Source: Utricularia gibba (Eukaryota > Plantae > Magnoliophyta). From it: DNA of 64,000 bases. The notes under the pieces were generated by a model, which made no database searches, was not told the DNA's origin, and saw nothing but the letters and a program-made list of their open reading frames with translations. This document shows positions 8,387-63,821 of this stretch, piece by piece (position 1 is the first letter of the stretch; each line of letters starts with the position of its first letter). Both the position numbers and the translations under genes were made by a program. The DNA lies in contig CM007989.1 of NCBI GenBank assembly GCA_002189035.1, forward strand, positions 6,758,001 to 6,822,000, given 5' to 3'.

Positions 8387-9340
8387 ATGGATGCGCCACC
8401 ACCTTCTACTTTCTGGCCTCAGGTTTGGATCCAAAGCTTCAGTCATCTTTTTCCAATCGGTTTCCATTTTTTTAAAACGTCCAATCGAAAGCTGAGTCTG
8501 AGAATCTGGTTAAGATCTTGAGGTGAAGAGATTTTGACAATTGAAAGATCAATGAAAAACTTGTCTTTTGTTTTTTTTTATCAGGAGAGATCCATGAAAA
8601 GTTGCTCAGTTGAGAAGAAAGTGAGCAGGCCTCAGAAAGAGCAAGGAGTCAACTGCCCAAGATGCAGTTCAACCAACACAAAGTTCTGCTATTACAACAA
8701 CTACAGCCTTTCACAGCCAAGGCACTTCTGCAAAACCTGCAGAAGATACTGGACTGAAGGAGGGTCTCTGAGAAATATTCCAGTTGGAGGAGGATCAAGA
8801 AAGAACAAGAAACCCTCTTCTGCAAATACCCATCATTCGACTACTTCTTCTTCTTCATCTAGAAAAATCCCTGAGTTTCTAGCTCATCAACAAAACCCTA
8901 AACCCCTTGAAGCCCAAGATCTCTCCTTAGGATTCTCCGCTAAGAATTTCCACGTCCCCAGTTTTGGTAACGCATCAAAGCTGGAGTTATTGCACAAGGA
9001 TCCCCCACCTCCTCCGCCGCCGCAGATGATCGGATCATCGCCGTCCCATTACTCGTTCGTCCCGCTGCCGTTCATCGCCTGCGGCGATCCGGCGGTGGTT
9101 TACTCCTCAGGGTTCCCTTCCTTGCCGGAGTTGATCAAGCCGACACTCAACTTTTCACTGGATGCAGGACTTGGGAGCAATTATGGAAGTTTCCAGGGGG
9201 GTCCGCCCACAAATATGAAGGAACTCGTCTTCCCTTTCGAAGGCGTGAAGCAGGGTTCCAGCCGCGGTGATCAGAACGGAGATCAAAATGCAGATTCCAT
9301 TGGCATTTGGAATGGAGTTTTAGGTGGAGGCTCCTGGTAA
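8387..9340 (+). CDS. Dof zinc-finger transcription factor
   Basis: Exon 1 8387-8422 ([12 protein letters not shown], typical short Dof first exon); exon 2 8585-9340. Dof domain [50 protein letters not shown]; C-terminus [12 protein letters not shown]. Confidence 0.95.
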
Positions 9341-15848: not shown

Positions 15849-16934
15849 AAGTCAAATTATTTTTTATTTTTTAAAAATAAAATCAATTCAAAAAATATTT
15901 TAAAATTATTAAAAATAATTAAATCATATTTTTTTAATAAAATTGTAACATGAAAATATCTCAAGTCTTTTTTTTTTGTTTCTTTGCTACATCAATTCTT
16001 GTTACCAATATTTACACTACATATTTACTTAGCATTATATTTACTCCATTACAATATAATATAAAATATATTTGATTGATTAATTTTAATTAGAATAATA
16101 AATATTTCGTTCTTCTAAAAAATTAATTATACTCATGATTTTTTTAATATAAATAAAAATAAAATAATATATTTTGATTGAATTTATCTATTATAAAATT
16201 CATGAATATTTAAATTCTAATCCTTGATAAATATTACTTCCACTTATCAAATACAAAATTTTAATATATCTATTAGAGCATCTTTACTAGTTTCTGAAAA
16301 TCTTGATGTGACATTTCCGAAAATGAGGTAAATGTTTTGGAAATGATTAAACTTATTTTTCATTTTTTTTCATAAACGAAAATAAGGAAACTTGGTTTAC
16401 TTTTAGAAATGATTTAAAATGTAGTTTATAATATTTATTTTAATATTACAATTTTTGAAAATTGATACAAACGTAATAGACACTTAATAAAATAAATCTA
16501 ATAACTCAATTCTCGTCATGTGAGCATTTCGGAAAATGAGGAAATATGATCTTAATATTTGATAGGGTTTCCAAAATACTTGTATTTATTGACGGTTCAA
16601 TCCAATCAACGTGGGTTGGGAAGAGCCGCCGGGTTTAACCCGAACCGACCAAGTTCTAGCACTTTCCGCTGGCGCTGGGTAGACTTTTTCGGTGGTTTTG
16701 AGTCAGACGATTAGAACGGCAAAACCCGTAGATCCTTCTTTGCTTTTCTTCTTCTCAGTGCTTTTTGCCGGCGTCGGTATTCCGAGGGAACAGAATGATA
16801 TTCTTGCACTGAAGTAGCTGCGCCGGCCCACGGAAATTTGGCTCTTCTGTAAAACGTTCAGCTTGGGTTAATTTCTGATTCGTATAGATTCCTCATTTAT
16901 TTAGGGTTGGGGAATCGTGGTTTTATTCGCAGAA

Positions 16935-19229
16935 ATGGGGGATGTAGCGAATAAGGTTGCGTATTTTCAAGCTATTACGGGTATTGAAGACACGGATTTA
17001 TGCACAGAGATTTTGTCTGCTCACAATTGGGACCTGGAGTTGGCGATTGGATCGATTACTGCTGCTGAAACGCCCCGCGCTTCTTCATCTTCCGTCACCG
17101 CCTCTGCTGTTCCACCATCGGTCCCTTTAGTTTCAGGCGCATCTTCTGAAAACCAGGACGCGGGCCTCGTTCTGCCTTCTAATGGTAATAATTCTCCGGG
17201 TTTGGCTTGGAGAGTGATTACCCTCCCATTTTCTATTATTTCTGCTAGCTTGGGTTTGGTTTCTGGAGCGGTTGGGCTTGGTGTGTGGGCGGCAAGTGGG
17301 GTGTTGTCATATTCATTGAGCATGGTTGGGTTGGGTGGACGGGATCGTGGTGGAACCACGCCTCTGGTAACTCTTTCACAGTCTGTGGCGGAGGCAACAG
17401 ATTTCATTAACAGTTTCGAGAGTGATTACGGGAGATCAAGACCTAATTTTGTGGCTGAGGGTTTCATGGACGCATTGCAAAGGTCAAGACGCGAATATAA
17501 GCTGCTGTTTGTGTATTTGCATTCTCCAGAGCATCCTGATACACCTACGTTCTGTCAACAGAGTCTATGCAACGACATAGTTGTGGCATTTTTGAATGAA
17601 AATTTTGTGTCATGGGGTGGTAGCGTTAAAGCTAGTGAAGGGTTTAAGATGAGTAACAGTTTGAAAGCATCAAGGTTTCCATTCTGTGCTGTTGCAATGG
17701 CAGCAACAAATCAAAGGATCGCATTACTGCAACAGGCATGTATCTTTTTTTTCATTGCTTTTGGATCGACTCCTTGTTTTGTTCGTCTGTCATATTTTTG
17801 TGGATGCCTGTCACGCATCCCAATGGCGGGTATCTTTTCGTGTGGGTCCATGACTCATGAGATATACTTATCTGCTCAATGCACCACTGAAACATGCATA
17901 CATTGATTTGATACTGAAGGCTTTTAAATATACTAGGCTGTTATCTGATCTGAAGCATTAATCTGTTGCATTTGGTTGTTTTTACGTGTTTGAACTATTG
18001 TGCTACTTAAATAATTTTATAACAACGGTGTTTGAAGAATTCTCACTATGTTTAATATTTGTTAATGTGTTCAAGCTCTTCAGTGGAAAAACAATATGCC
18101 ATAGAAGTAATGATTTAGTATATGTTATTCTGAAGAATCATTTCACTTGTTCACTTTCAGATGATTGTTCTTATTCGAGTATGGTTTTTTCAGGTTGAAG
18201 GACCACAGTCGCCTGATGAAATAATAAGTTCATTGCAGAGGGTTCTTGATGAAAGTGCACCTGTACTTTTTTCTGCACGGATTGAAGCTGAGGAAAGAAG
18301 AAACAATATGCGTCTCAGAGAAGAGCAGGATGCTGCATATCGTGCAGCCCTTGAGGCTGATCAGGTATTACTCTATGATGGTTCTCTCTTTCTTGTACTC
18401 TATGTTCCTAGTCCGTCTAAAAAAGGGTCGCCTTAAAGGGAACCTTGCTAAGTCGGATTTTCTCTTCTTTCTTTCTCTTATTTGGTTCTAGGCTAGAGAA
18501 CGTCAAAGAAGAGAAGAGCAGGAAAGGCGGGAACATGAGGCTGCCGAAGTAGAAAGGAAAAAAATGGAGGAGGAGGAGGCTCGTGAACGAGCAGCCAAAG
18601 AATCTGCCCAGAAGGAAGCTGCATTAGCGAAGCTGCGTGAGGAGAAAGCATTGTCGCTAGGTCCTGAACCTGAAAATGGACCTGATGTAACCCGAGTAAG
18701 TTGCTCTCTTATATATCTCTTATCAATCCGAACAACACTGTGGCAGGGGTTAGTATTTTAAACCTTTTTCAATAGCCTTTTCATCAAGAGCATTTTTATC
18801 TTCTATTCGCCTTTTATTAGGATGTTGTAAAACCAAGCAGGACTTTATTTTACTAGAAGAATAGGTTGAAGAATGTTATATTCTCTGGTATTGTGAAGGA
18901 TGTAGTATTTGCAATTGGTTGCCATACAACTGATCTAGCAGTGTGTTTGGATGGCTAGTGTCGTTTCTTGTTATTTTGTATAACAGACGCACTTCTCCCA
19001 GGTCTTGGTACGATTCCCCTCTGGCGAGCGTAAAGAAAGGAGGTTCCACAGCGTGTCTACTATACAATCTTTGTATGATTACATTGATTCTTTAGGTTCC
19101 TTGGAACTTAACCGCTACAGACTTGTCTCCAACTTCCCTCGCTCTGTTTATGGTGAAGATAAGCTCTCCTTGACACTCCATGAAGCCGGTTTGCATCCAC
19201 AGGCAAGCCTTTTTGTTGAGTTAAGTTAA
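16935..19229 (+). CDS. PUX10: Plant UBX-domain protein (UBA-like, UAS, coiled coil, UBX), PUX10-like
   Basis: Exons 16935-17735, 18194-18364, 18492-18695, 19002-19229. AYFQAITG, LFVYLHSPEHPDTPTFC, LREEQDAAYRAALEADQ, VRFPSGER...NFPR, AGLHPQASLF. Intron 1 needs a GC donor. Confidence 0.94.
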
Positions 19230-21031: not shown

Positions 21032-21655
21032 TCACACTTCAGTGCTTGGCGGTGACGTGCCGGTGTTGTCGCGAGCACCTACCGGAGTCGGTATCCCGTG
21101 CCGGACGTCCGTACCGATTCCCCTACGACGAGAATGGAAAATGGAGAAGAAGAAGCCGGCGAAAACCCCGGCAGCCATGGGCAAATTGACGACCAGGACT
21201 CGAAGATTTTCGCCGGCGTGACGGAAGAAGCACTTGAGCACATCCTGATCGCTCCAAGCGAAGGCCAAGTAGACGGATAAGGAAACACATGCGCGAACGA
21301 AGTCCAATGCCTTGATCCTGTACTCCGACAAGTCGCCTTGCATACTGTTGTTGCTGTCCCCATTGAAGACGTAGAATCCTTTGAACGTCGCGATGCCATA
21401 CCGCAGCGTCCCGTCGGAGTCCACGAAGCTGTCAGTGAACGACGACACGAAGCATATGATGGAGGACACCACGATCAGCGACGCCGTGAGGCACTTGTTC
21501 GAGATGAGACACGTGCCGTTGTTGGAGAAGGAGGGCGTCAGGGTTTGGAAGGCGAACACGACGCCGGTGGGGAGAAGGTGCGCGAGGTTGGCGGCGGTGG
21601 CGAAGGGAGAGTGAGTGGCGCTTTGTGCAGGATGCTGGCCGGCTACGGCAGCCAT
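21032..21655 (-). CDS. DMP (DUF679) membrane protein
   Basis: Single exon. AANLAHLLPTG, FSNNGTC, SSFTDSF, YGIATFKG, DFVRA, HSRRRGIG are DMP-family hallmarks. Confidence 0.9.
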   Translation of the reverse strand: MAAVAGQHPAQSATHSPFATAANLAHLLPTGVVFAFQTLTPSFSNNGTCLISNKCLTASLIVVSSIICFVSSFTDSFVDSDGTLRYGIATFKGFYVFNGDSNNSMQGDLSEYRIKALDFVRACVSLSVYLAFAWSDQDVLKCFFRHAGENLRVLVVNLPMAAGVFAGFFFSIFHSRRRGIGTDVRHGIPTPVGARDNTGTSPPSTEV

Positions 21656-24274
21656 GGAGTTGTAAAAGGGTTTCTGTCTGTTTGAAAATCCGGGGAGTTC
21701 AGTTTTCAAGAGACATTCCGAAAAGTTAACAACGTGCACACAATCAACATATGATGCATTGCAACTGTGCAGAATTCCCCTTTCCAGAGAGTTTCAAAGG
21801 CATGGATAACAAAAGGGTTGGTATTCCAGACGTTGGAACGTGCGTCAACCACATCTAACATGTCCCTAAAGTGATTCAGGAGATGAAAATCAACCGCAAA
21901 ACACCCCCCACTTTATTCCAGACTTGCATGCAAACCTCTATCAGAAAACCCTTTTGAGAAGTTGGAGTGTGGCAAGTCTCCAGGCCATGGTCCCCGACAA
22001 CCCCAGCAATCAAAGGCTTGGAAACACAGCATCTTCCTTGATTCTTGAATCGTGTATATGGAATTGGAAAGCAATAAAAGGTAAGAACAAATTGATAATT
22101 GGAAAAACAAGATTTTCACTACAAAAAATGGAAAAAGTATGCAGAGAGTTTCAATAACTCAAGAACACTGGTTTGCTTAGAAGTTTGAGGATGCATTCAT
22201 TATACTAAAAGTAGGTTCTTACGTTACTTGTTTCTTCTTGATATGGCTATGAGATGAGACATAATTTTCCTCTTTTACCATATCTTCTGTACATCACCTC
22301 TTTTTCAGAAACGTATCTGATTGACCTCGAACAACGTGAAAGAACATAAGCCCCAGATTGTTTTTCTCTTTGAAGAGCACCCTCTTGGGAGGCTTGCTCA
22401 TTGTAGGCGTGCAGAGTTTCATGCCATCTTCTTGTTGCGTAGGCCTTCTAAAAAAACCTCTTTGTTGAAGGTTGGATCTAATACTCTTCTGACTGCTCTT
22501 GTTGGGCAAGGTTTCCCAGAATATTACTTGAGATAGTTTTTCCTTCTCCCTAACATGGGTAAAAGCAGTCATCATGTTGCCCTAAATCAGAGGCCAAGAT
22601 TCTTGGAAACTCCTTTTTCTAAAGAATGAGTTCATTGCGAGACCACCATGCATCCAACTTCCTCTTCATAATCAAGAATCAATGAAGTTGCATCAAATGC
22701 TCAAATCAACAAACTTTGTGGTAAATATCATAATTTGGGTTAGCCTCATTTAAAGCGCATCTGGTCTCATGCTTTAAAGTTGATAGTTCAAAATTTCAGA
22801 CTTTAATGTTGAAATTAAAAATTCGATAAATCAAATAATACATATGAAATTCAAGTATATAAAAAAATATAAATTATATTAAAAATATTAAATTCAAAGA
22901 TTCACAATCTCTTATATACTTAGTTATTATACTTTCATTTTATTTATAACTACAGACCCCTCTCGAATTTCATAAATGGGAACCTAAATCGTCCGATAGA
23001 TTTTACAACTAGTAACTCGGCGGTTTAGTTCCTTGACACCATGTATTTCTGCATATCTCAACTCTCTTATCATCAACTGTGAGTCAATTTTGTTGTTACT
23101 TTTTTTCCGAATAAAAATTAGTCTGAAGTATTTACTGTAGTGGATAGATGTGTGTGGCTTGGTGGGGCGAGGTGAAATAAATCTGGCTGCTGAGGGCTGG
23201 GCTGGCCTGGCCTGGCCTGAGAGAGAGCGTTCGTTATCAGGCGTAGTAAACAGCAGAGGGAATCCTACCTGCAAGAAAGGACATCATAAAATCCTCATTA
23301 TCATCTAAATGGACCTCCTCGGTCGCTTTTATTCTAATAAAACTCCCATATCAATGCCCCTCCTTTGTTCCATATTCCCTTTGCTTCCAGTTTCCAGGTT
23401 TCCCTACTCGCTCCTTCCACCCACAAAACCAGATCTGCTTCCATCTCGAAAACGTTTGTTTCCAGGATCATCCCATCCCCCCCTTGTGATCTGCTCCACT
23501 GTTTCTTTGTTTTTCTCTTTTTTTTTTTTAGAAAATTGCTGTAGTAAATCTCAAAAGTGATGATGGGAACAGTGCAAGTTGGTAACAGTTGTGCTTGCTT
23601 ACTTGAAAAGCTTTTTGTGTTGAAGCAAGTGGAGATTCCACTGCCATGAATGCCTCCTTTTTGCGCAGTCATTTATAGGGATCTCTCAATTTAGGGTATT
23701 TTTGTTAGGAGATGGGATACATCATATACCAATGTACGATAAACCAGATAAAATATTGATATTATATACAAAAAAATAAAAAATTAGTAAATAAGATTGT
23801 TGTGTTTGGATCCCCCTTTTTTTGGCCTTGGAAAGTTTGCAAGATTTGGGATGGTTTTGTTATGTTTGGTATAACTTTTTTTTCATACAAGTTTTTCAAA
23901 AATATTTTTTTATGATTTATGTCCCAAAGAATTTGAAAATAAGATTACCCCAACTTTTATTTTATGATAATAAATTATGAAAAAATGATTTGTGGGGGCC
24001 AAATTTGTATTTTGGATTTTGGAATTATCGAGTTGATGGATCACTGAGATTGTAATAATGAGTTTGAGAAGGACAAAATCTATGACATAAATCTCTTGCC
24101 TTTGCAGGAAACCGAACTCTCATGTCATTTTTGGTTTCCTCGTCATGTCTTCTTCGTTCCAACTCACATAGCTCTTTGTCCCCATCTCCTAATATTGTCC
24201 CAACGCCTTCATTCGTCCATTCATACATAACCTGCACGCATGCTCCTGGATCCTGGCTCCCTCCTTCCACCACC

Positions 24275-25162
24275 ATGATGAACCACGGCGAAGTCCGATG
24301 CCTCCCCGATCCTGTCTCCGGCCATCGCATGCAACTCCACGATCCACAAAACCCTAATATTTTTCCACTCCACGGTATGGATTTCTTGTTATTGCAAATT
24401 GGATTATTTCGGTTTTCAGATACCCAAGATTGTGACGTTGGCATTGTGGATGGGTTTCAGGGGAAGCGAAGGCGGCGGCGCCGTGTGTGGTGAGCACGCG
24501 GTGGAACCCTACGCCGGCACAGCTAGAAGCATTGGAGGGGATCTACCGGAGAGGGACGCGAACGCCGACGGCGGATCAGATCCAACAGATCACCGCGAGG
24601 CTGAAAAGACTAGGCAACATTGAGAGGAAGAACGTTTTCTACTGGTTTCAGAACCGCAAGGCCAGAGAGAAGAAGAAGAATCGCCGCCTTTTCGAGCTTT
24701 TCCCCGACGAGAAATGGATTCTTCCTTCCAGAAAGAAGCAGCCCGGTACACCCAATCATCGTCATGCTACAACAACCCAAAGTTTCAGTCCCTCCTAAAA
24801 TAAAATGTGCTTCCACCATTTTCAGGCTCCGTGGATATCGCAGAAGATGGGAGAGATAAGCTGTCCAGATTAACAGGATCCTCTTCCATTTACAGCAGCA
24901 GCAGCACACCCACAGAGGTAACTTTTCTGCGCTAGTTCCACAGACTACACGATTCTAGTATCACACAATCAGGCTCTTTTACATATCATCCCACTTCCGA
25001 TTCCCTCCGGAATGACTGGGGTTTCCGATTCAGGGTCGAGCAGTGAAAGGCGAGGGCGATCATGAAGCAGAAGCATGCCAAGAGAGTGGGAACCCGTTTG
25101 CGTGGAGAAGGATCGTCGCCCCTCCTCACGAGTTCATTGAGTTTCTGCCCACCAAGAAATAA
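24275..25162 (+). CDS. WUSCHEL-related homeobox protein, WOX1/WOX6-like, divergent
   Basis: Exons 24275-24374, 24461-24745, 24826-24917, 25034-25162 with compatible phases. Homeodomain [10 protein letters not shown]...[14 protein letters not shown]; C-terminal FIEFLPTKK* resembles the WOX1/WOX6 EFLPLKN tail. Exons 3-4 are less certain. Confidence 0.85.
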
Positions 25163-26453: not shown

Positions 26454-26618
26454 TGCAAGAAAGTGATACGAACATTCCCTCCAAGGAAGGCATTCCTGCC
26501 ACTGACTTGATTTCCTGGTCTGATTCAACAACTACGAGCATTCTTGGAATGGAGGGTCTAGTTTTCTGTCTATATATAAGAATACAGGGTTTATTATCTT
26601 TCTCTCATTCTCCTAGAA

Positions 26619-26980
26619 ATGACTACTAAAGTTCTTGGAACCATCTGCTTCACACTTGTCCTTCTCACTGGAGCCACGGCTTCAAGGGTCATCCCAACCC
26701 TGCAAAAGGGTTTGCTCGTGGAGACTCAGCTGCGAGGCCTCCCGCCGCCATCGGCGTCATCTTCCTGCACGTATATCCCCGGCATGGATGGCGGCAATCC
26801 GTGCACATTGAGTGAGAAAAACTACGCCGGAGGTAAGGGGAAGGCCGGCGGTTCAAGGGTCGTGGAGGTTGAGCAAAGCCTTTTGGGGAGGCCCTGCCTA
26901 AAGGGCTTCCGCCGCCATCGGATTCCTCGCCGTGCACATACATCCCCGGCGACAATACCAACCCCTGCCCACTGAACTAG
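26619..26980 (+). CDS. CTNIP/SCREW-like secreted peptide precursor with two tandem modules
   Basis: Signal peptide MTTKVLGTICFTLVLLTGATA. Module 1 RGLPPPSASSSCTYIPGMDGGNPC. Module 2, in a shifted frame, ALPKGLPPPSDSSPCTYIPGDNTNPCPLN* (TAG 26978-26980). Confidence 0.75.
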
Positions 26981-27360
26981 GGGGAAAAAAAGACTGCAGA
27001 TAGCCATAGGAGTTCTTCAAGTGGAGGAGAACAATTCTCTTCTCTGCTTTTCTTTTCGTTTTTTATTCTTGTAGAAATATTTCTTGATTTGTTGGTTTAT
27101 GATGATTATTGCGCCATGAAACTTGGTAGCTGAAAACACCTCATTTGGACACTCTAACCATCATCTTTGCAACAACTACGTGGGTTGGTTGGGTTTCACC
27201 TTTGACTTTGGACCTTCCCTTTTGTTTGATGACTTTTCTGGGGGGGCGCCTTACCAACCAGCCGTGTATGACTTCGGTTGCAAGTAAAATAATAGGAAAA
27301 AAGGGGGGCAAGTTGAGAATTTCACAAAATTGTCTTGTAATCGATTTTGCGAAGAATAGG

Positions 27361-27485
27361 AGGGTCGGCCAACGAGCCAACCCTATCGAGTTTCCACAAA
27401 TTATGTCGGCCATATGTCTTGATAGCCATACAGCACCAGCCAATAACCAGGGCTAGCGTGGCATATTTAGCCAACCGACCCTTTT
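27361..27485 (-). ncRNA. U11: U11 minor-spliceosomal snRNA
   Basis: Minus strand begins AAAAGGG. GTCGG/CCGAC closes a multi-hairpin junction; ATCAAGA loop at 27423-27417; Sm site AATTTGTGG at 27402-27394; terminal hairpin AGGGTTGGC-TCGTTG-GCCGACCCT. About 125 nt, directly downstream of a USE+TATA promoter. Lacks the U1 5' end ATACTTACC. Confidence 0.85.
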
Positions 27486-27511
27486 AAGATGACGGGTGCG
27501 ATCCGAGGCGG

Positions 27512-28407: not shown

Positions 28408-30107
28408 ATGGAGGGAGAGGGGACAAGCTGAAAGTACTGACGGCTTTGGACTCGGCGAAGACGCAGTGGTACCATTTCACGGCGATCATTATCGCCGGAA
28501 TGGGCTTCTTCACGGATGCATACGATCTGTTTTGTATTTCGGTAGTAACCAGGCTTCTTGGCCGGATTTACTACCACCACGAGGGCTCTGCGAAGCCGGG
28601 AAGTCTACCTCCGAACGTCTCGGCGGCCGTTAACGGTGTCGCATTCTGTGGAACTCTGGCCGGCCAGCTGTTTTTCGGGTGGCTCGGTGATCGGTTAGGC
28701 CGGAAGAGAGTGTACGGCATAACGTTGCTGTTGATGGTGTTAGCTTCCATTGCATGTGGACTTTCGTTGGGCGATAAGCCGACGGCCGTGATGGCGACGC
28801 TCTGTTTTTTCAGGTTTGCTTTCTTTCAGGCAAGTCAGAGTTAGTTACAGTAAAATTGCCGGGAATAATAAGCCTGTATGCATAACAACAGGTTCTGGTT
28901 GGGATTTGGGATTGGTGGTGATTACCCGCTTTCCGCCACGATCATGTCGGAGTACGCCAACAAGAAAACACGAGGGGCGTTTATCGCCGCTGTGTTCGCG
29001 ATGCAGGGGTTCGGGATTCTCGCCGGAGGAGCGGTGGGGATAATCGTCTCCTCTGCGTTCAAGGCGGCCTACCCTGCTCCTCCCTACTCCGTCGATCCGA
29101 TCGGCTCCACTGTCCCTCAAGCCGACTACGTGTGGCGGATAATTCTCATGTTCGGCGCGCTACCGGCAGCGTTAACATACTACTGGCGAATGAAGATGCC
29201 GGAAACCGCGCGGTACACGGCGCTCGTCGCGAAAAACGCTAAACAAGCCGCTGCGGATATGTCGAAGGTCTTAAACGCGGATCTAGAGTCGGAAGAAGAA
29301 ATCGCCGATCCGAAACAGGAGGGAAAACGAAACGAATTCGGTTTATTTTCAAAGGAATTTCTCCGGCGCCACGGGCTACATCTCATCGGCACGACTACGA
29401 CGTGGTTTCTCCTCGATATCGCGTTTTACAGCCAAAATCTCTTCCAGAAAGACATATTCAGCGCGATCGGATGGATCCCGAAACCCGCAACAATGAGCGC
29501 CCTAGAAGAAGTATACAAAATCGCCAGAGCACAAACGTTGATCGCACTCTGCAGCACCGTTCCCGGCTACTGGTTCACGGTGGCGTTCATCGACAGGATG
29601 GGGCGGTTCGCAATTCAGCTGATGGGGTTCTTCTTCATGACCGCCTTCATGTTTGCTCTGGCGATACCGTACAATCACTGGACGCATAAAGACAACAGAA
29701 TCGGATTCGTGGTAATATACTCATTCACCTTCTTTTTCGCTAATTTCGGCCCAAACGCCACCACCTTCGTCGTTCCGGCGGAGATTTTCCCTGCGAGGTT
29801 CCGATCCACCTGTCATGGAATTTCCGCGGCGTCGGGGAAAGCCGGGGCGATTATCGGAGCTTTCGGCTTTCTTTACGCCGCGGAGTCGCCGGATCCGACG
29901 AAGAGAGACGCCGGATATCCCGCCGGAATCGGAGTAAGAAACGCGTTGATTGTACTTGGGTGTGTTAATTTCCTGGGAATGGTGTTCACGCTGCTGGTTC
30001 CGGAGTCGAAAGGGAAATCACTGGAGGAAATGGCGATGGAAAACCTGGAAGATGAAGAAGCCAAGCACACAGAACCCACCAACAGAACAGTTCCTGTTGG
30101 CGTTTGA
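28408..30107 (+). CDS. PHT1: High-affinity phosphate transporter, PHT1 family (start ATG appears frameshifted)
   Basis: Exons about 28408-28813 and 28892-30107. [35 protein letters not shown]; signature [13 protein letters not shown]; [31 protein letters not shown]. The natural-looking ATG at 28408 is out of frame unless one G is added to GGGG 28419-28422. Confidence 0.95.
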
Positions 30108-32312: not shown

Positions 32313-35300
32313 ATGAAGCCTAGTACGCGGCTTTCCTCCGCTGTTTTTCAACTCACGCCAACGCGTACGAGGTATTTGTTTCTTCTCTGGGTTGTTTTTT
32401 TGTGCCATTTGGTTTGCATTGAACTGATTCGTGCGCGTAGGCCGACCCCCAGTTTTAGATCTTTGTGTTGTTTTTCACTTGGTGGGTGCATTTTTGGTTG
32501 ATGTGTATATTTGGAATTTGGAGTAAATCGATGGGATCTGTAAGGGAAAAAAAAAAAACAGAGCTTTCTTGTGGTGCATTCATTGATGATCACATGGGCG
32601 ATAAGGAGTGGACATTTGCAATGATATCTATAGTAGGATATAAAGTACCAGTGACCTAAACTTATTAAAATGTGTCTATATTTTATTGCTCGTACTACAG
32701 TTTCTTCCTGACTTCCGGTGATGATGTGATTCACTTTCAAAACTGCTATTCGCATATTGTGATGAATCTGAGAGATTTTTGGAGTTCCTTGCTTTGCAAA
32801 ATCCCAAATTTCATAGTTTTTCGATGTTCAGGTGTGAATTAATTATAATTGCCAAGGACAAGAAGGAGAAAATTGCTTCTGGACTGATAAATCCGTTTCT
32901 AGTACACCTCAAGACTGCTCAAGAGCAATTCTCCAGGGGTGGTTATTCTATTTTGCTCCAACCTGAAAATGCCAATGATGCTGCCTGGTTTACAAAGGCA
33001 ACTTTGGAAAGGTTTGGTTGGATCTTATCATATTGATGAGTTTACAGAGATGACACTCATTTTCACAGTTCATTTCAACCTCCTGGTCCTTAGTCTAAAT
33101 GAAATCTTGTACTTTTATTTGATTTCTGTTTGTTGCATTCAATTGATATTTGGTATGGGGGTTGGGTCCCGTTTATTATTTATGAGCGAATCATTTATGA
33201 ACTGAATTTACTGGGGGATGCTGAATCACTTCTTTGTATGGGAATTTTTGCGGTCCATTTCCATTGATGCTGACTTTCATTTGGATGGTGTTACAAAGGG
33301 AGATGCAATATGATGATGAACACCAGGATGTTCATGTAGCTCACGACTTAGTTGCAAAACAACATTAACACTGTAAACTATGAACAGGTTTGTCCGTTTT
33401 GTGAGTACTCCAGAGATTTTGGAACGTGTCTACACGGTAGAGACTGAAATCTTTCAGATTGAAGAAGCAATTTTGATCCAAAGCAGCAATGATAGGCGTC
33501 ACAGCAGACATGATTTTGGAAACAATACTGTAATTTCATTGGGAAATTTATTTTTTTGAGATTGTTACTTTGCTAAATTTCGTTAGTAATATTATCAATC
33601 ATTGACAGGTGGAGCATCTTCATGAAAAACCTATGGGTGTCAACACAGGTAGCTGTAGCGTAGTTTCATGATTTTTTATGATTTAAAAAAATGATTGTAT
33701 CCAGTTCATGTGTGCTTCTATTCCCTGCATCGTTTCCTTTTGCATCATGTTTCAATTGTAATAGAAACTTTTATTGGTGTAAGCATTCTGATGGAACCAC
33801 TTAATTGTCTTTTCTTTCAAGTGATGGACTCCATCTTGGCCACTGGGTTAAAAACTTTTAGTTATTTCTATATGGATTGGATTTCACCTAAGCATTTCTC
33901 AAATTTGCTTCTTCTTGACTGGTCATTTACTTTTCAACACTGATCTCTTGAAAATAATGGGCAGGTGACAAACCAATCTCCAATTGTGATGAGAAAGCTA
34001 TTGTTTTATACACGGTGATTAGTTGTTTAGCTTTCATTCTCCTCATTCAATTACCATGCGTTTGTTTACTATTATCTTTCTCAACAGCCTGGGCCGCTGC
34101 TGCCCGAAGCTAATGGGTCATGTCACCATGAGGAGGACCCGAAGTATGTGATGCATTTTTAATATAGAACTTGAGATTCCTTCTCTGAGAATTATTTGGG
34201 ATTTGTGATTACTAGGCTGTCCAGGAAAACCAGCTCAGTTATTTCAGTTTATGTTTGTTCCTCATGACTGTTTCCATGTGATGTTGTATGAATGTTCAAT
34301 GCTTGATCTTTCAGCAAATACAAACACTATAAATGACATATGTATATTTGAAATCTAAATTTGTTAATCTTCATTTCCAGAATAAAACTTTTGAAAGTCC
34401 TTGAGACCCGTAAAAGTATCCTACAGAAAGAACAAGGAATGGCCTTTGCTCGTGCTGTAGCAGCTGGATTTGAACTAGATGACATGGGTCCTCTGGTCTC
34501 TTTTGCAGAATGCTTTGGTGCCACTCGAATGAAGTAAGTTTTTTCTTTCTGACCATCTGACAATGTGTCGCTGAGATCAATAATGCGGTATGCAGCTCAG
34601 TTTGTTAAGCTTGCATCTGAGTGGCTGTATCTTCTAAATAGGGAAGCATGTTCAAGGTTTGTGGAACTTTGGAAGAGCAAACACGAAACTGGCCAATGGC
34701 TTGACATTCAACCATCAGAAGCATTGGCTGATCAGTCCGATTTCTCAATGAAGAATACATCCGGAATCATCCTCTCTGATACTCTTTTGAACAATGGTGA
34801 ACCTAATCTTATGCAGGGATCTAAGGGGAATTCAGGTCCACCAAATGAGGCAGGTATGCAGCAATTCAATGTCAGTGACCAGTTGATGTTGTTACTTATG
34901 AGTATCTTCATGCTATTACACATACTGTTTTCTTTTTTTTTTACTTCTGATTCCTTTACCTTCAAATCTGAATCAGCATCTTAGATAAGCCTAGCATTCC
35001 AACTGATAATATTTCGTGAGCATTTCAGGTGAATTGTAAAGTCATGAATGTGTGAGGATAACACTCGGTCTTAGTTTTTACAAAAAACCATACTTTCAGC
35101 ACCATTGCTCATTGTTCATTTTCTGCAAGGAGCATTTACATTTGTCCAGTTCGCTATCTTGTAATTTTCGTGTTTATTTAACTGCTAACAGGAGACAGCA
35201 TGGTCCCGAATGGTCAACAAGAGTTTTATCAAGCTCAGTTTCCCCAGATTGCGTATCCCCCATGGCCTATGCATGCTATGCCTGATGGTCAACCACCTTT

Positions 35301-38300
35301 CCAGGCATATCCAGTTCAAGGGGTACCACTATACCAGCCTTATTCAAGTGGTCAGTTCTTTCAGCCAAATCGCCATCCTGTAGAGCTTTTTGCATCAAAT
35401 TTTAGTCCTTCCGATATTCAAAAGCACTCCTATGATAACATTGATGGTAATGCTACAAGAAAGGCCAGTGAGATTAGCAGAACAGGAGCACATGATGATG
35501 TAGCATTGGATGGTCCTCAGAGTGTAACATCTCAAAAGAAAGTCGGTAGTTCCAGGAAAAAGAAGTCAGATACAGTAGTTATACGGAATATTAACTACAT
35601 CTCTTCTAAAAGGAGAAGTTCTGGAAGTGAGACAAGTTCTGGTTCTCATTCGGATTCTGATGATAAAGATGAGTTTGGTGTGGCTAATGATAATTACGAC
35701 CGAATTCAGAGTTCTTCAGGGGCAGGAGGAAGCAGAAAAGATCCTGATGACAGGCAGTGGCAGGCGTTTCAAGAATGCTTATTGAGAAAGAGTGACGAAG
35801 AAAATTTTGCTGAAAAAGATGCAATTTTTGCAGCAGAGAAGGATGCTAAGATAAAAAGGCAGGCTCTTCCTGCAACTGACGGTGCATTAACTCAAGTTAT
35901 ACGGGATTCACTTGGAATACAAAATGGTAGGGACATCAGTAGATACAATGAAAGCACTTCTTGTAGGCCGTTGGGATCAAGTGATGAAACCTTTATCCCT
36001 AGTGTAGGGAATGAGTTAATTGATAGAAACCATGAGAGAAGTATTCAGTTTTTGGAGGCTAATGGGAGGAGAGTTCTACGTAGAACAATTCATGAGGATT
36101 TTATGTTTGATGGTCCAAGGAACCAAGACGATTTCAGGAATTCTTATGATCCTCAGTATGCAAATTCTTTTCATGACGCTTCCAATAAGGAAGAGAGGCA
36201 TTGCTCAAGTGGAGTTCCGGATGAATTGCTTGTTCCATTTAGGTCTCAGTCATTAGCTCCATATGATGAAACAAACAGAGCTGCTGTTGATGTATGCTCT
36301 GAGATTCCAGGCAAAAACCTCAAGATGGGGGATGCGAGACAGCAGAACGAAGTGAATTACGAGCCTAATGATTTGGGTTTGCTGCCTGAACGAGGCACCG
36401 AGAGTAGATCTTTAGAATGCAATCCAGCCCTTGACTATGAAATGCAAGTGTGTGCAGAGGGGCCAAAGGGAAAGTTGAATAGCAATGTAAATAGATCTGA
36501 AAAGGGTTCAAAATCAAAACCGAATTCAGACATGTCACATAAACACAGAACTGGAGGGCCTGTTAGAAAGGGCAAGAACATGAAGGTGAGTCCTCCTGCA
36601 GATGCTCGAGCACGAGCTGAGAAATTGAGATCTTACAAGGAAGATTTGCAGAGAATGAAGAAAGAGAAGGTATGTGTAGTCCTTATTTCAGCCATGTCAT
36701 GCTGCACTCAAATCGATATCTGCTTAAAATTTGTGCCATTAAGCTCTCAACTCTTTCTTGAATTTCTGAAGTATGTGACCTCTACCTCGAACTTTCATAT
36801 ACATTGTGAAATTTAGAGACCCATTTCTTATAATGCCTTCAGCTTTTTCTTCCCCTGTTTTATAAACACGTGTTCTATTGTGAATTGTGCACAGGAAGAG
36901 GCAGAAAAAAAGAGGCTTGAAGCTTTAAGGGTTGAGAGACAAAAGAGGATCTCTGCTAGAGGCAGTTCCTCAGGCAAGCCCTCACCCCTCCTTCCGCAGG
37001 TAAAGCAGCTGCCATCCAAACTTTCTCCAGCAAGTAGTAGAGGGTCAAAGTTCAGTGATTTGGAGCCGCAGTCATCATCACCTCTTCAAAGATCCAAAAT
37101 CAGAACTTCACTCAGATACAGTGAACCGAATACAGTCATGAAATCGAGTAAACTAAGTGACGGTGTCCATGCCTCTGGGAATAGGTTAGCCAGGTCCTCA
37201 TCATCATTGTCTGGGGCAAAAAGAGAGGAAGACAACGCCACGCCTGATTCTAAGTCCTCTTTGCCCTGGATAAGAAGGCTTTCAGAGCCCAAAACGGTAT
37301 CAAACCCCCCTTCAACAGCAACCAAAGCACGAAGTGCTGAGACTGCATTTGCCCGGAAATCAGTCAAGGGGCCTGATAAAAGCAAGGTATCTGCTATCAT
37401 CAACCTTGATAAAAGCAAGGGTGAAAGTCTTCCTGAACTGAAGATAAAGGGTTCAAAGTTTCCTATAAACATTCATGATCAAACACCGTCCTCAAAGGAA
37501 GTTGAAAATGCAAATAACTGCAATGTGCCTCAGAAGGTGGATGCAGATGATGGTCATGTAGTTGAGAAAATTGTTGTGGTAAGTGAAGAGGAGAATCCTT
37601 CTTTTCTGACTTCGTCTGTGTCAAAAAGGCCTATGATTTGTGATGGGCATAGCACCCAAGAAACAGTTCAAGAGGCGGCTCTTCTTGTTCCTAATGTACA
37701 GCAAGAGATGCAAAGCATTTCCAAAACAATGGTTAATGTCCATCACTCTGTGGGAGGCCGTGGCAATCATCAGCCAGACTATGAAAGGGCTAATAAAGAA
37801 AGATCTGAAACAGTGTCAAGAGCTGAAGAATCTGCTAAAGAACTTCCGCCTTGCAATATGGAAGACAATGTGGATCATCAAAAGGGAATTGATGAGAAGG
37901 CTTCAATAAAGGAGACATCAAAAGGTTTGAGACGTCTTCTCATCTTTGGAAAGAAGCATCATGTTTCCTCAACTGCTGATCGAAGTGTTGACTCGGAAGG
38001 TGGTGGAGAAGCCAATGACACGAAGAAAATGACTTCACCACCAGAAGGTAACTGCATTTCTCATCTCAAGTTTGTGTGATGACAATGCATTAACTCTATG
38101 CCTGGCTAGCCATTGCTACAGTGAACTTGAAGCTCTCTTCCTGTGGTTATTATCTATGCCATGTTGCCCTCTCATGTCACCTAATTTCCTCTGTATTCTT
38201 CCTGGTTCCAGCTCAGACTCTGAAAAATCTAATCTCAGAAGATGATAATTCAGCAGCGGCAGGTGCTCCTCGAAAGGGTAAGTCCTTTGGCTTCAAAATG

Positions 38301-39882: not shown

Positions 39883-42573
39883 TCATCTGCCATTGATGCT
39901 CTCGACCAAGCTCACCTCTTTACCTCCACTCTTGTTCTCCAGCTCCTCCTTGAGAATCTCCATGGAGTCCGAGATCTCCTCCTTGTAAGTATAAAACCGC
40001 GAAAGCAGCAGAAAAGCCACGAGGTTGATTGCGTTCAGAGCCGCCAGTAAGGCGTAGTAGTAATCTAAATGCGATGCATTTAGATTGTTCCTGATCCACC
40101 CTCCACTGCCATTTCCTCTGGTGATCTTCTCCACGGTTGACAAAAGGCAGCTGCTCAGAAAATTCCCAACTCCCAAGCTGGTCATGGAGTAGGAAGTCCC
40201 TAAGCTCTTCATGCTTTCAGGGGCCTGATCGTAGAAAAATTCGATCTTGGCGACCTCTAGAAAGGCGTCGGCGACCCCATTAGAATGAACTGCGGAAGGA
40301 GTACGAAGATGGACAAAGGGACTACGCTTAGATTCCCTTTGATGTCATCTCCGTGAGCTCTGGCTACGTGAAGCCTGTGCCTCTCAGTGAGTGACGCCAC
40401 TGTCATGATCATGATGTGGATCAGCATCCCGATCCCCATTCTCTGCAATAGGGTGATTCCACGTGGGTTTTTGGTGAACTTTCTGACGAACTTGACGAAC
40501 CATTGATCGTAGATGACGACGGAGATGAGCATAGATAGTGTCACGAAGCCGGTGAGGCTGGCAGGGGGATTGTGAATGAGCCTAATTTCCGGTCCAGGGT
40601 GGTACCTTGTTTAACGAACAGGGTCCCGATTTGTGCGATCATCGTGCTTGGGATGAAGGTCGCCGCCAAAATCGGAAGCATTCGGAGCATCTGCTTCGTT
40701 TCTTCGACTTCGGTCTGACTGCACAGCATCCATCGTTTCGTCGAGCCGGTCTCTGTTGCAGCTTTGTTCAAGAACCTGGAAAAAGATGTGTCAACGCTCG
40801 GCGCCAAAATGACAATCCAGAGAAGCTTGATGTGCCACTACCTCAATGACGTGGAGGCCACCGGTTGTCCGGCAGGATCACCGCCGGACGGAACAGGGAG
40901 TTTCCATTTCCTAAGAGAGGCCACAATGACTCTGGCCATTTTACTAAAAGGGCTGCCAGTAGGTATTTTATGTCTATAGAAAGGCGTTCCGGCCAGAAAG
41001 ATGGCAATCGAGACGGCGAGGCCGATCGTCGGGAGGGCGTAGCCGAGCGACCAACCGACGTTATCCTGAATGTAAACCAGGACGGTGTTGGCGAAGAGGG
41101 TTCCCATGAAAATGCTAAACATCCACCAGTTGAAGAAGGAGAGCTTGTGGGATTTCTCTCTGGGGTCGAATTCGTCGAACTGATCCGCCCCGATGGTCGA
41201 AATGTTGGGCTTCGTTCCGCCGGTGCCGACGGCGAGTATGTAGAGAGCTCCAAAGTAGACTCCTAGTTGTAAAGTCGTGGCCTTTGGGCAGTTCACGCCC
41301 CTGGGATCGGAGCATACCGCCGGCTTCAGTGGGCTCACCGATACTGACAGAGTGAGCAACGTCATTCCCTGAGAATCAAGACAAAAGAGTTACACACGGC
41401 CACAAGATTCCAAGTCAACGGCGGTCGGCTTGTCGGAAGCCCCACAAGTAGAGTTTATCGGTTACCAGGAGATAGATCGCGGAGGCGACGATGAAAGTCC
41501 AGTAGCGGCCGAGGATGGCGTCGGCCACATACGCGCCCAGTACAGGAGTCAGCCAGATCGTGCCGACCCAATTCGTCACGTTGTTCGCCGACTGAACCGT
41601 CCCCTGGTGCAGCCGCGTCGTCAAGTAGATCACCAGGTTCGAAGATATGCCATAGTACGCCATTCTCTCGAACACCTCGTACACTGTAACAGAAACACAT
41701 TGTAAGAAGAAAGCAGCCCGGTTCCTCGATTGCTCCCTGTCCTAAACTTTAGCCCGAAAACTAAACTCCCACATTAATGCATGAATCACTCTCAACTGGC
41801 GCCGCCATTACTGGATACTCAAGCATTTAAAGGAGAAGACTTGACTTCCAGACACGACACAGTTATTCGGCTTCGTACGCAGGAGGCTCAACTCAACTAC
41901 TTTCCGGGCTGCTCTGCTAGTGCGGTGGAATCATACATCAATGAGGCAACCACCCTCATTAAGGAGTAATTAATCACAAAACTTAGCATAGTTGCATCTA
42001 CTCGTCCTATTCTTTAATCCCAACCAGAAAAGCGAGTTAACTGTCCGACAATTTCATTTCTTATCGGCATCCTGCATTCTACCCACTTGCGTTGCAAGAG
42101 CTGGTTCAAAATGAAAGCAAAGCAGGCTCCAAATTTAATGTCTTTTGGCGGTATTAAATAGCAGTAGATGAGTGAAGCTGTCAACAGACAACCAGCCCCA
42201 ACGTGTGGAGCCATGTCCACAGAGCAGGCGCTGCGGATCCGGAGCTCTTACTTCAATCTTCCATCACTCTGGTATTCACCAGACACACCATTACTCAAGC
42301 TAAGGAAACCAAGCCAAGCCACACGGGACTCTGTCGTTACCCTTGGATTCTACTTTTTTTACCCCAGTCAAAAAAGCAGGTCCAAACCACAACACACCGC
42401 ATACGAAAATCTCAAAGAAAGAAAAAGGGAGGGAGTGAATGAGAACGAACCGACTACGAAGGAGCAAGCAGTCCATCCCCAGTTTTGGATCGGAGAACAG
42501 GCCTCCCTCTCAGGTCAACAGACCCATCTTTAGTATACGCGCCGCCGTTATCTTCAACACCAGAGGCGTCCAT
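39883..42573 (-). CDS. NPF5: NRT1/PTR family transporter, NPF5.2/PTR3-like (three apparent homopolymer frameshifts)
   Basis: Exons 42573-42451, 41683-41466, 41368-40842, 40775-39883. YTKDGSVDLRG, EVFERMAYYGI, GTGGTKPNISTIGADQFD, FFNWWMF, EVEETK, LQRMGIG, FFYDQAPESMKSLG. The frame is restored by adding one base at each of 42477-42480, 40564-40568 and 40275-40278. Confidence 0.93.
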
Positions 42574-46705: not shown

Positions 46706-48391
46706 TCACCAGGTATCACCACAACTACACTTTCCATTTAAGAATCTATGGTATCTGTGAGCATCCCTTACTATGATTTCCCTGTTTTCTATTGTACTGA
46801 TATACCTGAATACTTGATGACAGTCTCTACAGATCTTCAAATTTTTCACCACTCTCAGAGGCTTTCCATTTGGGGTTACACCGGGTAGTAACCCGAAAGC
46901 CACAGCTAGTTTTTCACTATGACCCCAGAGCATCTCCTTCTTGTCTTCCTTATTTACATCATGTAGTGCTTCATTCATATGCGGAACATACCCTAGCTTC
47001 TCAATCTTCACCATTAACTCTGATAGCTTTGCGTATACCTCCTCCATCCTTTCATGCCGCCTGTCTCCAGCAAAGAACACATGAACCCTTCCCTTTACTT
47101 CAATCCAGCTTCTTCCCACTTCCTTTCTTACTCTCATGTCCCTCATCATCTTCCATATTTCCTTAACTTCGTTCCATCTTCTATCACTTGCAGAAGCATT
47201 AGCTAAAATAACATAGGCCGATTCGTCGTCTGGGTTGATCTCACGGAGTTTCTTGCTGATCCTAGTAGCAAGTTCAGGGTTTGTGTGGTTCACGCAGCTA
47301 GACAGCATTGTCCGCCACACTGCTGCATCTGGCTGGTAGGGCATTGTCAAGGCAACTTTCTCTGCTTCATCCAATCTCCCTTTTCTCCCCAGTGCACCCA
47401 CTAAACATGTGTAGTGCTCAATCTGTGGCTCTAATCTGTGCTGCAGTTTCATTTTGTCCAGCCACTTCTCTGTTTCAGATACCATCCCTGCATTGCTCAA
47501 CGCCGTCAGAACTGCCAAGAAACTGTAATTGTCTGGTTCTATTTCTTGTCTTTCCATGGACATGAAAAGCTCAATAGCAGATTCATGGCTTCCTTGTTGC
47601 GCATATGCAGCCATAATTGCATTCCAAGCGGCAATGCTTAGTTCCACTCTGAAGAGCTTTCTTGCATCCTCAACTAGTCCACACTTCCCATACCCGTCGA
47701 TCAATGCCGTCTTCACGTATTCATCGGAATCCCATCCACAAACGAGAGCATGCTCATGAATAACCATACACTGATCGAGCATCGCCGTCGCCGAAGCTGC
47801 ACGCAGCACCCCGGAAACGCTATGAGGAGTCGATCCCACGCCCTGCCTTCTCATCTCGACAAAATAACGCAAAGCATCAACGGGGCGATGGTTTCTCGCG
47901 AACCCATTAATCATAGCCGCGAAGCAAACCTCATCCCTCTCAGGCATTTCATCGAACACCTTAACTGCAGCATCCATATCCGGAGTCCGGCAATACACTG
48001 AGACGAACCCAGAGGCGACAAAAGGGTTATAGTCCACAGCGAGCTTGAATGCGAGAGAATGAAGTTGTGGGCAGAGAGAAGTAGATGATAAATAGGCGCA
48101 TGTTCTGAGCACCGTGGCGAATGTACGTGCATTGGGAAGAGATGGGGGGTTGTGGCGAAGCATGGAGAGGAAGAGGGAAATGGCGGTAGGAGAATTGGCG
48201 AATGCGGAGATGATGGAAGTCCATGTGACTGTATTTGGGCAAGGAATAGAGAAGAAGAGACTTAGAGCAGAGGAATTGAGATTGAAATTGGAGTAGAGGG
48301 TGATGAGGTGATTGAAGAAAGCTACGTTTTTTGGGGAAGGAACCAGTTCCTTGATAGCTTCGCCATGGATGACACGCGGATCTTTCACCAT
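46706..48391 (-). CDS. PLS-class PPR protein with E/E+/DYW domain
   Basis: Intronless. PPR repeats (VTWTSII, VFDEMPERD, ALIDGYGKCG, AWNAIM, HYTCLVGALGR), VWRTMLSSC, HSEKLA, KNLKICRDCH, RDAHRYHRF, CSCGDTW*. The start may lie further upstream. Confidence 0.95.
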   Translation of the reverse strand: MVKDPRVIHGEAIKELVPSPKNVAFFNHLITLYSNFNLNSSALSLFFSIPCPNTVTWTSIISAFANSPTAISLFLSMLRHNPPSLPNARTFATVLRTCAYLSSTSLCPQLHSLAFKLAVDYNPFVASGFVSVYCRTPDMDAAVKVFDEMPERDEVCFAAMINGFARNHRPVDALRYFVEMRRQGVGSTPHSVSGVLRAASATAMLDQCMVIHEHALVCGWDSDEYVKTALIDGYGKCGLVEDARKLFRVELSIAAWNAIMAAYAQQGSHESAIELFMSMERQEIEPDNYSFLAVLTALSNAGMVSETEKWLDKMKLQHRLEPQIEHYTCLVGALGRKGRLDEAEKVALTMPYQPDAAVWRTMLSSCVNHTNPELATRISKKLREINPDDESAYVILANASASDRRWNEVKEIWKMMRDMRVRKEVGRSWIEVKGRVHVFFAGDRRHERMEEVYAKLSELMVKIEKLGYVPHMNEALHDVNKEDKKEMLWGHSEKLAVAFGLLPGVTPNGKPLRVVKNLKICRDCHQVFRYISTIENREIIVRDAHRYHRFLNGKCSCGDTW

Positions 48392-61603: not shown

Positions 61604-63821
61604 CTATGGTGCCATGACACCTTCCAGTGTGTGGTACAGAGAATCTGCCAAGTCGACTTTGAACAGAATAGCTTTCAGTGTTTGCATCACGTCATATGTT
61701 GGATCAAGCTTGCGCTGCCAACCCTGTAAAATGTACAGCACTTGCTAAACTGCATGATTTTTGTAGGCATGCACTCTGCTCTTCGAGACATTACTTACCT
61801 CTAACACCATGGTTGTGACAATTACAGCACAGATATTGCCATCTATGTTTACTTTGTGGCGCCGGACTTGCTCCAGCAATTGTTGCATGCAATCACTGGG
61901 ATGGACGAAGCCAGCTTCGATGGAGTTCCAAGCCTTAAAAGTTACGTCCACTTCCTAAATGATTCAAGTATGAGACTAAATTTTAAGAGGAGAGGAGAGG
62001 TTTCAAACCAACAAAATCAACCACCTTTATGAAAGCCTCTGGAGATGGACAGTTCTGATCATCGGATAACTTCAATGTGCATTCTGCTGCTGTTCTACCA
62101 TCACGGAGGGCCACCGCCTTGAAGAATTTCAGTAGATTGTTTCGGTCCTTTTTGGAAAGTTCAGCTGTCATCCCAACATCAAGTAGGATGATGCTTGGTT
62201 TTGAATTAAACAGGGGTTTTCCGGAACCTCTGTTCTTCAATTCTTTGACAAGGATGTTTCCTGGATGCAAGTCGGCATGAATGAAATTATCCACCTGAAA
62301 ATTGGAAACATTAAGTGCAACATATTCTTAAGGAACGAGGAAGTTGCTTCTGCCATTGTGATCATTCCAGTTCGTGAAAAAAACCTTGAGTCATATTCAA
62401 GACATGTAATGAAAGTGATCTATTCACGTACAACAAGAATTGTTGTATTATTATGAGCACAAGCACCTCCTCTGACAGTACTAAAAAATCTGGTAAATAA
62501 TCAAAACGTTACCAGAAGCATCTTCAGAAGTGTGGTAGTCCCAATATGAGCTAGTGCAGTTTTGACTTGGCCCTGCCCTTCAAATTTGTCAACATAATAG
62601 AGGATACTAGATCCGCTCTCATATGATTCAACCAAAACAGCAGGATGCACAAGGGGATAAATTGGCTTTGGAAACGATACATCTTTTGAGTGACGGAAAT
62701 TGTAGATGAAACGGCTCAAGTTAGCTGCTTCCCTAGCAAGGTCAACCTGTGACATCATAAAAACTGCAAACTGTTGTGCGCTTTCATCCAACCTTAACCA
62801 TTTCAAATTAGGGATGTATCTCGAATATTTTGCAAATAGATTAATGAGAACAAAATCTCTGTGGATTGCTTCTCTAACACCTGGATGTCTAACTTTAACT
62901 GCAACAATATGCTTCGCCTGCTGTCCATGATGTCTTGATCTTAGTGTAGCTTTATGAACTTGAGCTATGCTTCCTGATGCCACAGGTTCTTCTTCAAACT
63001 GGTCAAAAAGTTCACCAAGCTCATGCCCGAATGCTTTCTCAATTGTGCTTTTTGTATACGAGAAGCTATGAGCGGGTGCTTTAGAGTGAAGTTGGCAAAG
63101 CTCATTACAAAGATCCTTCGGGAACAGATCAGGCCTTGCTGCAGCCCATTGGCCCCATTTGATAAACGCAGGACCAGCTTTTTCTAATGTTACACGGACA
63201 CTACGTATCCATGACCTCCTGAACTCAATGCTCAGGGAATCAGCAAATGGAGCCATTAATATGCAAGGAGAAAACAAAAATGCCAGGTACAAGGCTCTCA
63301 CAATCAATCTCAAACCCTCGAGGATAGAATGCAAAACCCGCACCACATAAAACTGCTGATCGTTAGGATGTCTGTAGAATATATTCTTCGGAAAATAATC
63401 TGCCTGAGCATAAGTTCCTTCATTCCATGCTAGTTCTCCAATGATAAGAGCTAGAATGCCAGGTGCTACCAGGTGCGAACGAGTTAAAGAAAGGCTCACG
63501 GCACAAGCCATCCTACTTATCGGTGGCAAAGTTGGTTTGTTGTGACAATACATTTCAGAAAACCATCTCCAAACGGCTTTAACAGGATAAGAAAGTCTGT
63601 AACTTGTATACGAAACATGAATGGCCCTTAGTCCACTGTTTTTCAGTAACCCTTTAACATTACGTGACATATGTGAAGAACATCCTCCACCACGAACAAT
63701 GCAGTATGAGTGAAGGAATTTCGCAGAAGATGACGCCTGATTATGCATCATCTTATTGCAGAGACTCCTCCAATGTTTGGAGGACCGTGCCACCCGCCTC
63801 GAGCAGTCATTTGAAAAAAAC
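61604..63821 (-). CDS. ABC1/UbiB atypical kinase (5' exon probably outside the window)
   Basis: Exons 63821-62513, 62294-62025, 61954-61799, 61723-61604. GPAFIKWGQWAAARPDLFP, PVASGSIAQVH, VAVKVRHP, QVDLAREA, DNFIHADLHPGN, LDVG, GWQRKLDP. Confidence 0.92.

Follow-up and report, generated by a model that had tools for sequence, protein, structure and literature searches.

A probable two-module CTNIP/SCREW precursor gene in Utricularia gibba and the likely artefactual nature of its frame break

Does a short open reading frame (ORF) of Utricularia gibba encode one phytocytokine-like peptide or two, and if two, why are they found in different reading frames? The ORF (26619..26975, + strand, 118 aa) lies in the window analysed here, by which we mean the whole 64-kb stretch of DNA. 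Its translation starts with a signal-peptide-like N-terminus and continues with one CTNIP/SCREW module consisting of a PPPS stretch, Cys50, a CTYIPG core, Cys62 and an EKNYAG tail. The N-terminus is hydrophobic, ends in ATA with SRV following, and aligns with the signal-peptide region of the family profile described below. A second module, again with PPPS, a Cys-CTYIPG core and a second Cys, is read in frame +3 within 26873 to 26977, with a TAG stop at 26978-26980; in this frame there are 35 codons without a stop at module 2. Since frame +3 is closed upstream by a TGA at 26870-26872, any switch of frame would have to occur within 26873 to about 26888, or via splicing. A degenerate pattern back-translated from the core matched twice in the window (at 26766 and 26933; 0.01 matches are expected by chance), and this core-pattern search found no further CTNIP genes in the 64 kb. 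The two units can be aligned as DNA and share long identical blocks, including CCGCCGCCATCGG and ATCCCCGGC, while TTCAAGGGTC, from the linker (26832-26885 region), is the same in unit 1. The two Cys are separated by 11 residues in module 1 and by 10 in module 2, and the PPPS of each follows an anchor, which is L-R-G in module 1 and P-K-G in module 2. The precursor is 118 aa long as assembled and would be about 120 aa long if read through; CTNIP/SCREW precursors measure about 60-120 aa. Judged by its sequence, the locus is most likely an unannotated gene for a secreted-type CTNIP/SCREW precursor of stress-signalling peptides, with two tandem modules (Table 1).

Table 1. Coordinates of the features discussed, numbered from the first nucleotide of the window.
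Feature	Coordinates	Strand	Basis or remark
TATA-like box, putative	26571..26579	+	about 40 nt 5' of ATG; read from the sequence
Signal peptide, predicted, about 21 aa	26619..26681	+	predicted cleavage between ATA and SRV; family-profile alignment
Unit 1: propeptide and module 1 (anchor LRG, PPPS, Cys50-CTYIPG-loop-Cys62, EKNYAG tail)	26682..26831	+	family HMM
Linker = unit 2 propeptide, frame 1, Gly/Lys-rich, then SRV..EQSLL	26832..26885	+	family HMM alignment
GGGG run, proposed one-base shortfall, frame 1 to frame 3	26885..26888	+	frame logic and like lesions in NPF gene
Module 2, frame 3 (anchor LPKG, PPPS, Cys-CTYIPG-loop-Cys, PLN end, TAG stop)	26888..26980	+	family HMM and dN/dS
Proposed 71-nt intron, disfavoured	26833..26903	+	GT..AG borders; coding composition
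Control lesion 1: C5 run one base short	40564..40568	-	Pfam PTR2 coordinates 182-242, then 241-332
Control lesion 2: G4 run one base short	40275..40278	-	Pfam PTR2 coordinates 241-332, then 330-391
Dof zinc finger	8534-9340	+	
UBA/FAF1 exon	16917-17906	+	
DUF679 protein	21032-21739	-	
Homeodomain exon	24436-24795	+	
DYW-type PPR, intact, intronless	46706-48391	-	
ABC1 kinase exon	62501-63793	-	

An exhaustive phmmer search with exon 1 returned small plant proteins, the best being a 100-aa protein of Salvia divinorum (P0005; E = 1.9e-8, 52% identity). The five top matches (P0001-P0004 and P0008), each longer than 1,300 aa, proved to be unrelated Cys-rich repeat proteins and were discarded. A profile search gave 347 homologs. 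All are small plant proteins annotated as hypothetical, with Lamiales contributing many of them; this set overlaps the published CTNIP alignments in both species and motifs. When scored against a family HMM made from 118 single-module plant homologs, with the window sequence excluded, exon 1 gave 61.6 bits with its signal peptide and 54.6 bits without it, and the frame-3 piece with module 2 alone gave 43.8 bits, whereas the out-of-frame tail of the 118-aa ORF and a control frame gave -1.2 and -2.6 bits. On these scores, there is good sequence-level support for placing both modules in the CTNIP/SCREW family. The first-pass annotation had proposed both a homologous second module hidden in another frame and a match to the CTNIP/SCREW pattern; the module is confirmed, and the match is borne out as far as sequence can tell.

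The alignment of the Lamiales homologs spans the signal peptide, anchor, PPS, CTYIPG, second Cys and EKxxAG tail, the anchor being mostly P-R-G. Like motifs, with a CT[NYH]IP core, are found in Arabidopsis CTNIP1-5 and in the cacao sequences of eLife supplementary files 8-10, and the long-tailed published CTNIPs carry an x-L-x-E-K-x-[FY]-A-G tail that is also present in module 1 (PMC9191895). Both Cys are required for the published Cys58-Cys68 disulfide loop (PMC9191895; PMC13585564). A Pfam scan of both modules gave no match, the Pfam copy used being apparently without PF27884; this entry (named IDL5) has precomputed weak matches on some CTNIP homologs, including P0005, P0022 and P0023. A word-indexed protein search with the window ORF found no match, and no gene call or transcript product for the locus in the protein collections searched; in a comparison with the Salvia P0005 locus for synteny, the 119-nt module alone matched.

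Module 2 has been conserved as protein. Comparison of module 1 with the post-break part of module 2 by the Nei-Gojobori method gave pS = 0.67, pN = 0.21 and dN/dS = 0.14 (Fisher p = 9e-5), showing that purifying selection acts on both modules. Since the differences are mainly synonymous and frame 3 has no stop, module 2 must have been read as protein in frame 3 over most of its past. The two modules are 67% identical, a divergence about equal to that between separate Lamiales CTNIP genes, which makes the duplication an old one. As module 2 has not decayed, the frame break, if real, must be very young.

We then looked at the break itself. Placing the linker, read in frame 1 (26832-26885), in front of module 2, read in frame 3, raised the HMM score from 43.8 to 50.9 bits, the read-through being scored only with an X at the break, and the linker stretch S-R-V..E-Q-S-L-L aligned to the family propeptide after signal-peptide cleavage. 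This homology across the break indicates that the duplicated unit comprised a whole propeptide plus peptide. It also indicates that the proposed intron derives from coding sequence, with frame 1 in use before the G run and frame 3 beyond. The first-pass suggestion that one missing G at 26885-26888 would mend the frame is supported, as this gives a family-like reading. Formally, a base missing from the TTTT run at 26881-26884 is still conceivable and would repair the frame equally well; we favour the G run because the family consensus has Leu-Leu before the anchor and because of the G/C bias of the lesions described next. We think it rather probable that one G is absent from the assembly at this position and that the gene is intact.

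We screened the 64-kb window for neighbouring ORFs that share a strand but not a frame, and comparable lesions appeared in another gene. The last exon of an NPF/PTR2 transporter gene (39886-40837, - strand) is read in three frames, with breaks 13 kb from the CTNIP gene that lie at a C5 and a G4 run, each one base short (Table 1). At both breaks the frame moves the same way as at the break in the CTNIP gene, and past each of them translation recovers well-conserved stretches. The breaks in this exon are almost certainly an assembly artefact and not the mark of a pseudogene. The remaining adjacent-ORF chains of the window gave no clear case of another frame-broken gene. The comparison exons, about 8 kb in all, contain 33 G/C runs of at least 4, and 2 of these showed a one-base shortfall; 5 runs of this kind are present in the CTNIP gene. 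We infer that the base missing from the CTNIP gene is likewise an assembly error rather than a very recent mutation. Since single-base shortfalls in G/C runs make false frameshifts in this assembly, a seeming pseudogene or 'hidden' module in it should be read through first and interpreted biologically after.

Several other genes surround the locus (Table 1). Downstream of the peptide gene, at a distance of 380 nt and on the other strand, lies a full-length U11 minor-spliceosome snRNA gene (27358-27486, - strand; Rfam RF00548, 74.2 bits). It is followed by a PHT1-type phosphate transporter gene (28425-30107, + strand) with a 78-nt AT-rich intron (28814-28891) inside an F-F-R-F-W-L stretch. The best matches of the DYW-type PPR protein, at about 70% identity, are from Rehmannia, Paulownia, Perilla and Sesamum, which puts this DNA in core Lamiales. 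Two long same-frame ORFs (538 and 399 aa; 35200-38079, + strand) had no Pfam match.

Splicing offers a different way of restoring the frame. The first-pass annotation had proposed a 71-nt GC-rich intron whose use could switch between one- and two-peptide products. Its coordinates, length and GT..AG borders stand, but its status as an intron is not supported, given its coding composition and family-homologous codons, and the proposed switch is disfavoured with it. The interval has a GC content of 0.61 and a T content of 0.18, like the flanking coding sequence (GC 0.56-0.62), whereas the PHT1 intron, 1.9 kb downstream and verified by the conserved F-F-R-F-W-L junction, has a GC content of 0.38 versus 0.54 in the PHT1 exons. 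The interval thus has the borders of an intron and shows neither AU-rich contrast nor a lack of coding constraint. Moreover, it carries propeptide-homologous codons and the LPKG anchor, including the module-2 counterparts of the CTNIP4 Gln46/Arg47 anchor, and splicing would remove L-P-K from module 2; CTNIP4 without Gln46-Arg47 has an about 200-fold lower affinity for HSL3 (PMC13585564). The homologous genes checked (Salvia P0005, Thalictrum P0023, Melia P0052 and the ENA contig P0015) are all single-exon ORFs, and an annotated 75-nt 'intron' in an Asimina homolog, which merely spans an in-frame stop, is a cautionary parallel. Exitrons of coding-like composition are nevertheless known in plants, and an exitron at 26833-26903, perhaps alternatively spliced, would join module 1 directly to a module 2 without its LPK anchor, and upon retention give a one-module product. 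Its donor (GAG/GTAAGG) is near consensus, removal of the 71 nt restores the frame, and very short introns such as that of PHT1 are in use in this genome. The acceptor (CTAAAG/G), on the other hand, is weak by plant splice consensus. Weighing these points, we find splicing of the interval quite unlikely, and short GC-rich 'introns' that fortuitously mend a frame deserve distrust.

Alternatively, the sequence may be correct and the frameshift real and very recent, so that the gene would now make only module 1 and, out of frame, an Arg/Pro-rich tail of 47 residues, with module 2 left as a fresh relic. Taken at face value, the letters of the window say just this; genuine slippage mutations, too, are frequent in homopolymer runs, and no two-module precursor is found among the Lamiales homologs listed. 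However, the undecayed state of module 2 would require a very young lesion, and two like one-base shortfalls occur nearby in the otherwise intact NPF exon, so we consider a real frameshift unlikely. Programmed -1 ribosomal frameshifting at U_UUG_GGG (26882-26888), which would produce a mix of one- and two-module products, is scarcely credible: the heptamer matches X_XXY_YYZ in form and slippage by -1 yields the family-like reading, but Y = G does not give a canonical slippery codon pair, the RNA downstream of the heptamer has no more folding potential than shuffled controls (z = -0.71), and the pattern of homopolymer lesions is a simpler account of the break. A genuine four-G sequence with a one-/two-peptide switch, operated by the 71-nt exitron or, far less likely, by -1 frameshifting, is to our minds very unlikely; if it were true, the dose or type of a phytocytokine would be set after transcription. 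The best explanation, and one that we regard as likely, is an intact single-exon gene for a two-module CTNIP/SCREW precursor in which the absence of one G is artefactual.

How might such a gene act? An intact nuclear single-exon gene would encode a precursor about 120 aa long, in which a signal peptide precedes two propeptide-plus-peptide units in tandem. Each unit begins with an [L/P][R/K]G anchor, followed by PPPS and then by the Cys-T-Y-I-P-G-loop-Cys core. By family precedent, the precursor would be routed into the secretory pathway. By analogy with CTNIP4, excision near the anchor would release each unit in the apoplast, one disulfide bond would close each peptide, and each peptide may bind the HSL3/NUT ectodomain with recruitment of a SERK co-receptor. 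For CTNIP4 itself, both HSL3/NUT binding and SERK recruitment have been shown (PMC9191895; PMC13585564; bioRxiv 10.64898/2025.12.22.696113). Of the published interface positions, Gly48, Ser53, Thr59, Ile61 and Pro62 are kept in both modules, and Gln46 of CTNIP4 is kept in neither. Module 2 ends three residues past its second Cys, which predicts that C-terminal trimming would not be needed. If the read-through model is true, one transcript would deliver two different disulfide-looped ligands of the HSL3/NUT type.

The closest known system is that of Arabidopsis CTNIP4/SCREW2 (AT2G31345) and CTNIP1-3, which are ligands of HSL3/NUT. They share with the Utricularia gibba gene a small precursor, predicted to be secreted in Utricularia gibba, a [Q/P/L][R/K]G anchor, the Ser at position 53 and a Cys pair flanking T-x-I-P. 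They differ in that the Arabidopsis precursors have one module, ending 1-2 residues past the second Cys, and a loop of 9 residues, as opposed to two modules with loops of 10-11 residues. The remaining interface positions also differ: the Utricularia gibba modules have Pro or Ser in place of Arg51, Arg55 and Asn56, and Tyr in place of Asn60, the latter as in most non-Brassicaceae members. Module 1 more closely resembles CTNIP5 (AT3G23123) and the long-tailed CTNIPs of Lamiales, cacao and poplar, with which it shares the CT[HY]IPG core and the long tail; these precursors are single-module, and module 2 instead stops right after Cys-P-L-N. CTNIP5 was reported to be inactive in Arabidopsis assays (PMC9191895).

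The first-pass annotation knew only of precursors with one module, a generalisation that fails, as a search for multi-module homologs found them in public data. A two-module Aquilegia sequence (Aqcoe5G034200) is present in the 'relaxed' alignment of eLife supplementary file 9 (PMC9191895). Two modules are likewise found in contiguous single-exon ORFs of Thalictrum (KAF5 entry P0023) and Melia (P0052), and three in an ENA sequence (P0015). Such precursors carry at least two in-frame CTNIP modules behind one signal peptide, as the read-through model predicts for the gene described here. A Melia paralog (P0105) carries an extra degenerate module. Asimina triloba (P0011; L003:1501-2352, GCA_049466995.1) has five tandem degenerate modules whose I-P core is lost. 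All five share a genomic frame that a single in-frame stop interrupts; in the deposited 258-aa protein this stop and one module are bypassed via the annotated 75-nt intron. Four other candidates (P0006, P0029, P0030 and P0045) contain an internal signal-peptide-like segment and were rejected as probable fused annotations of tandem genes. In the CTNIP literature searched we found no discussion of multi-module precursors. The sources of the multi-module sequences include Ranunculaceae and Meliaceae; as these are unrelated lineages, multi-module CTNIP precursors probably arose independently. The two-module architecture is thus uncommon, but not unique, in the known CTNIP/SCREW family, and the recurrence of multi-module precursors in several angiosperm lineages raises questions about precursor processing and ligand dosage. 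Multi-copy precursors are familiar from CEP, some CLE and HypSys peptides, where one secreted precursor likewise holds several copies of a receptor-kinase ligand; those peptides belong to other families and are linear and post-translationally modified, rather than loops closed by a disulfide.
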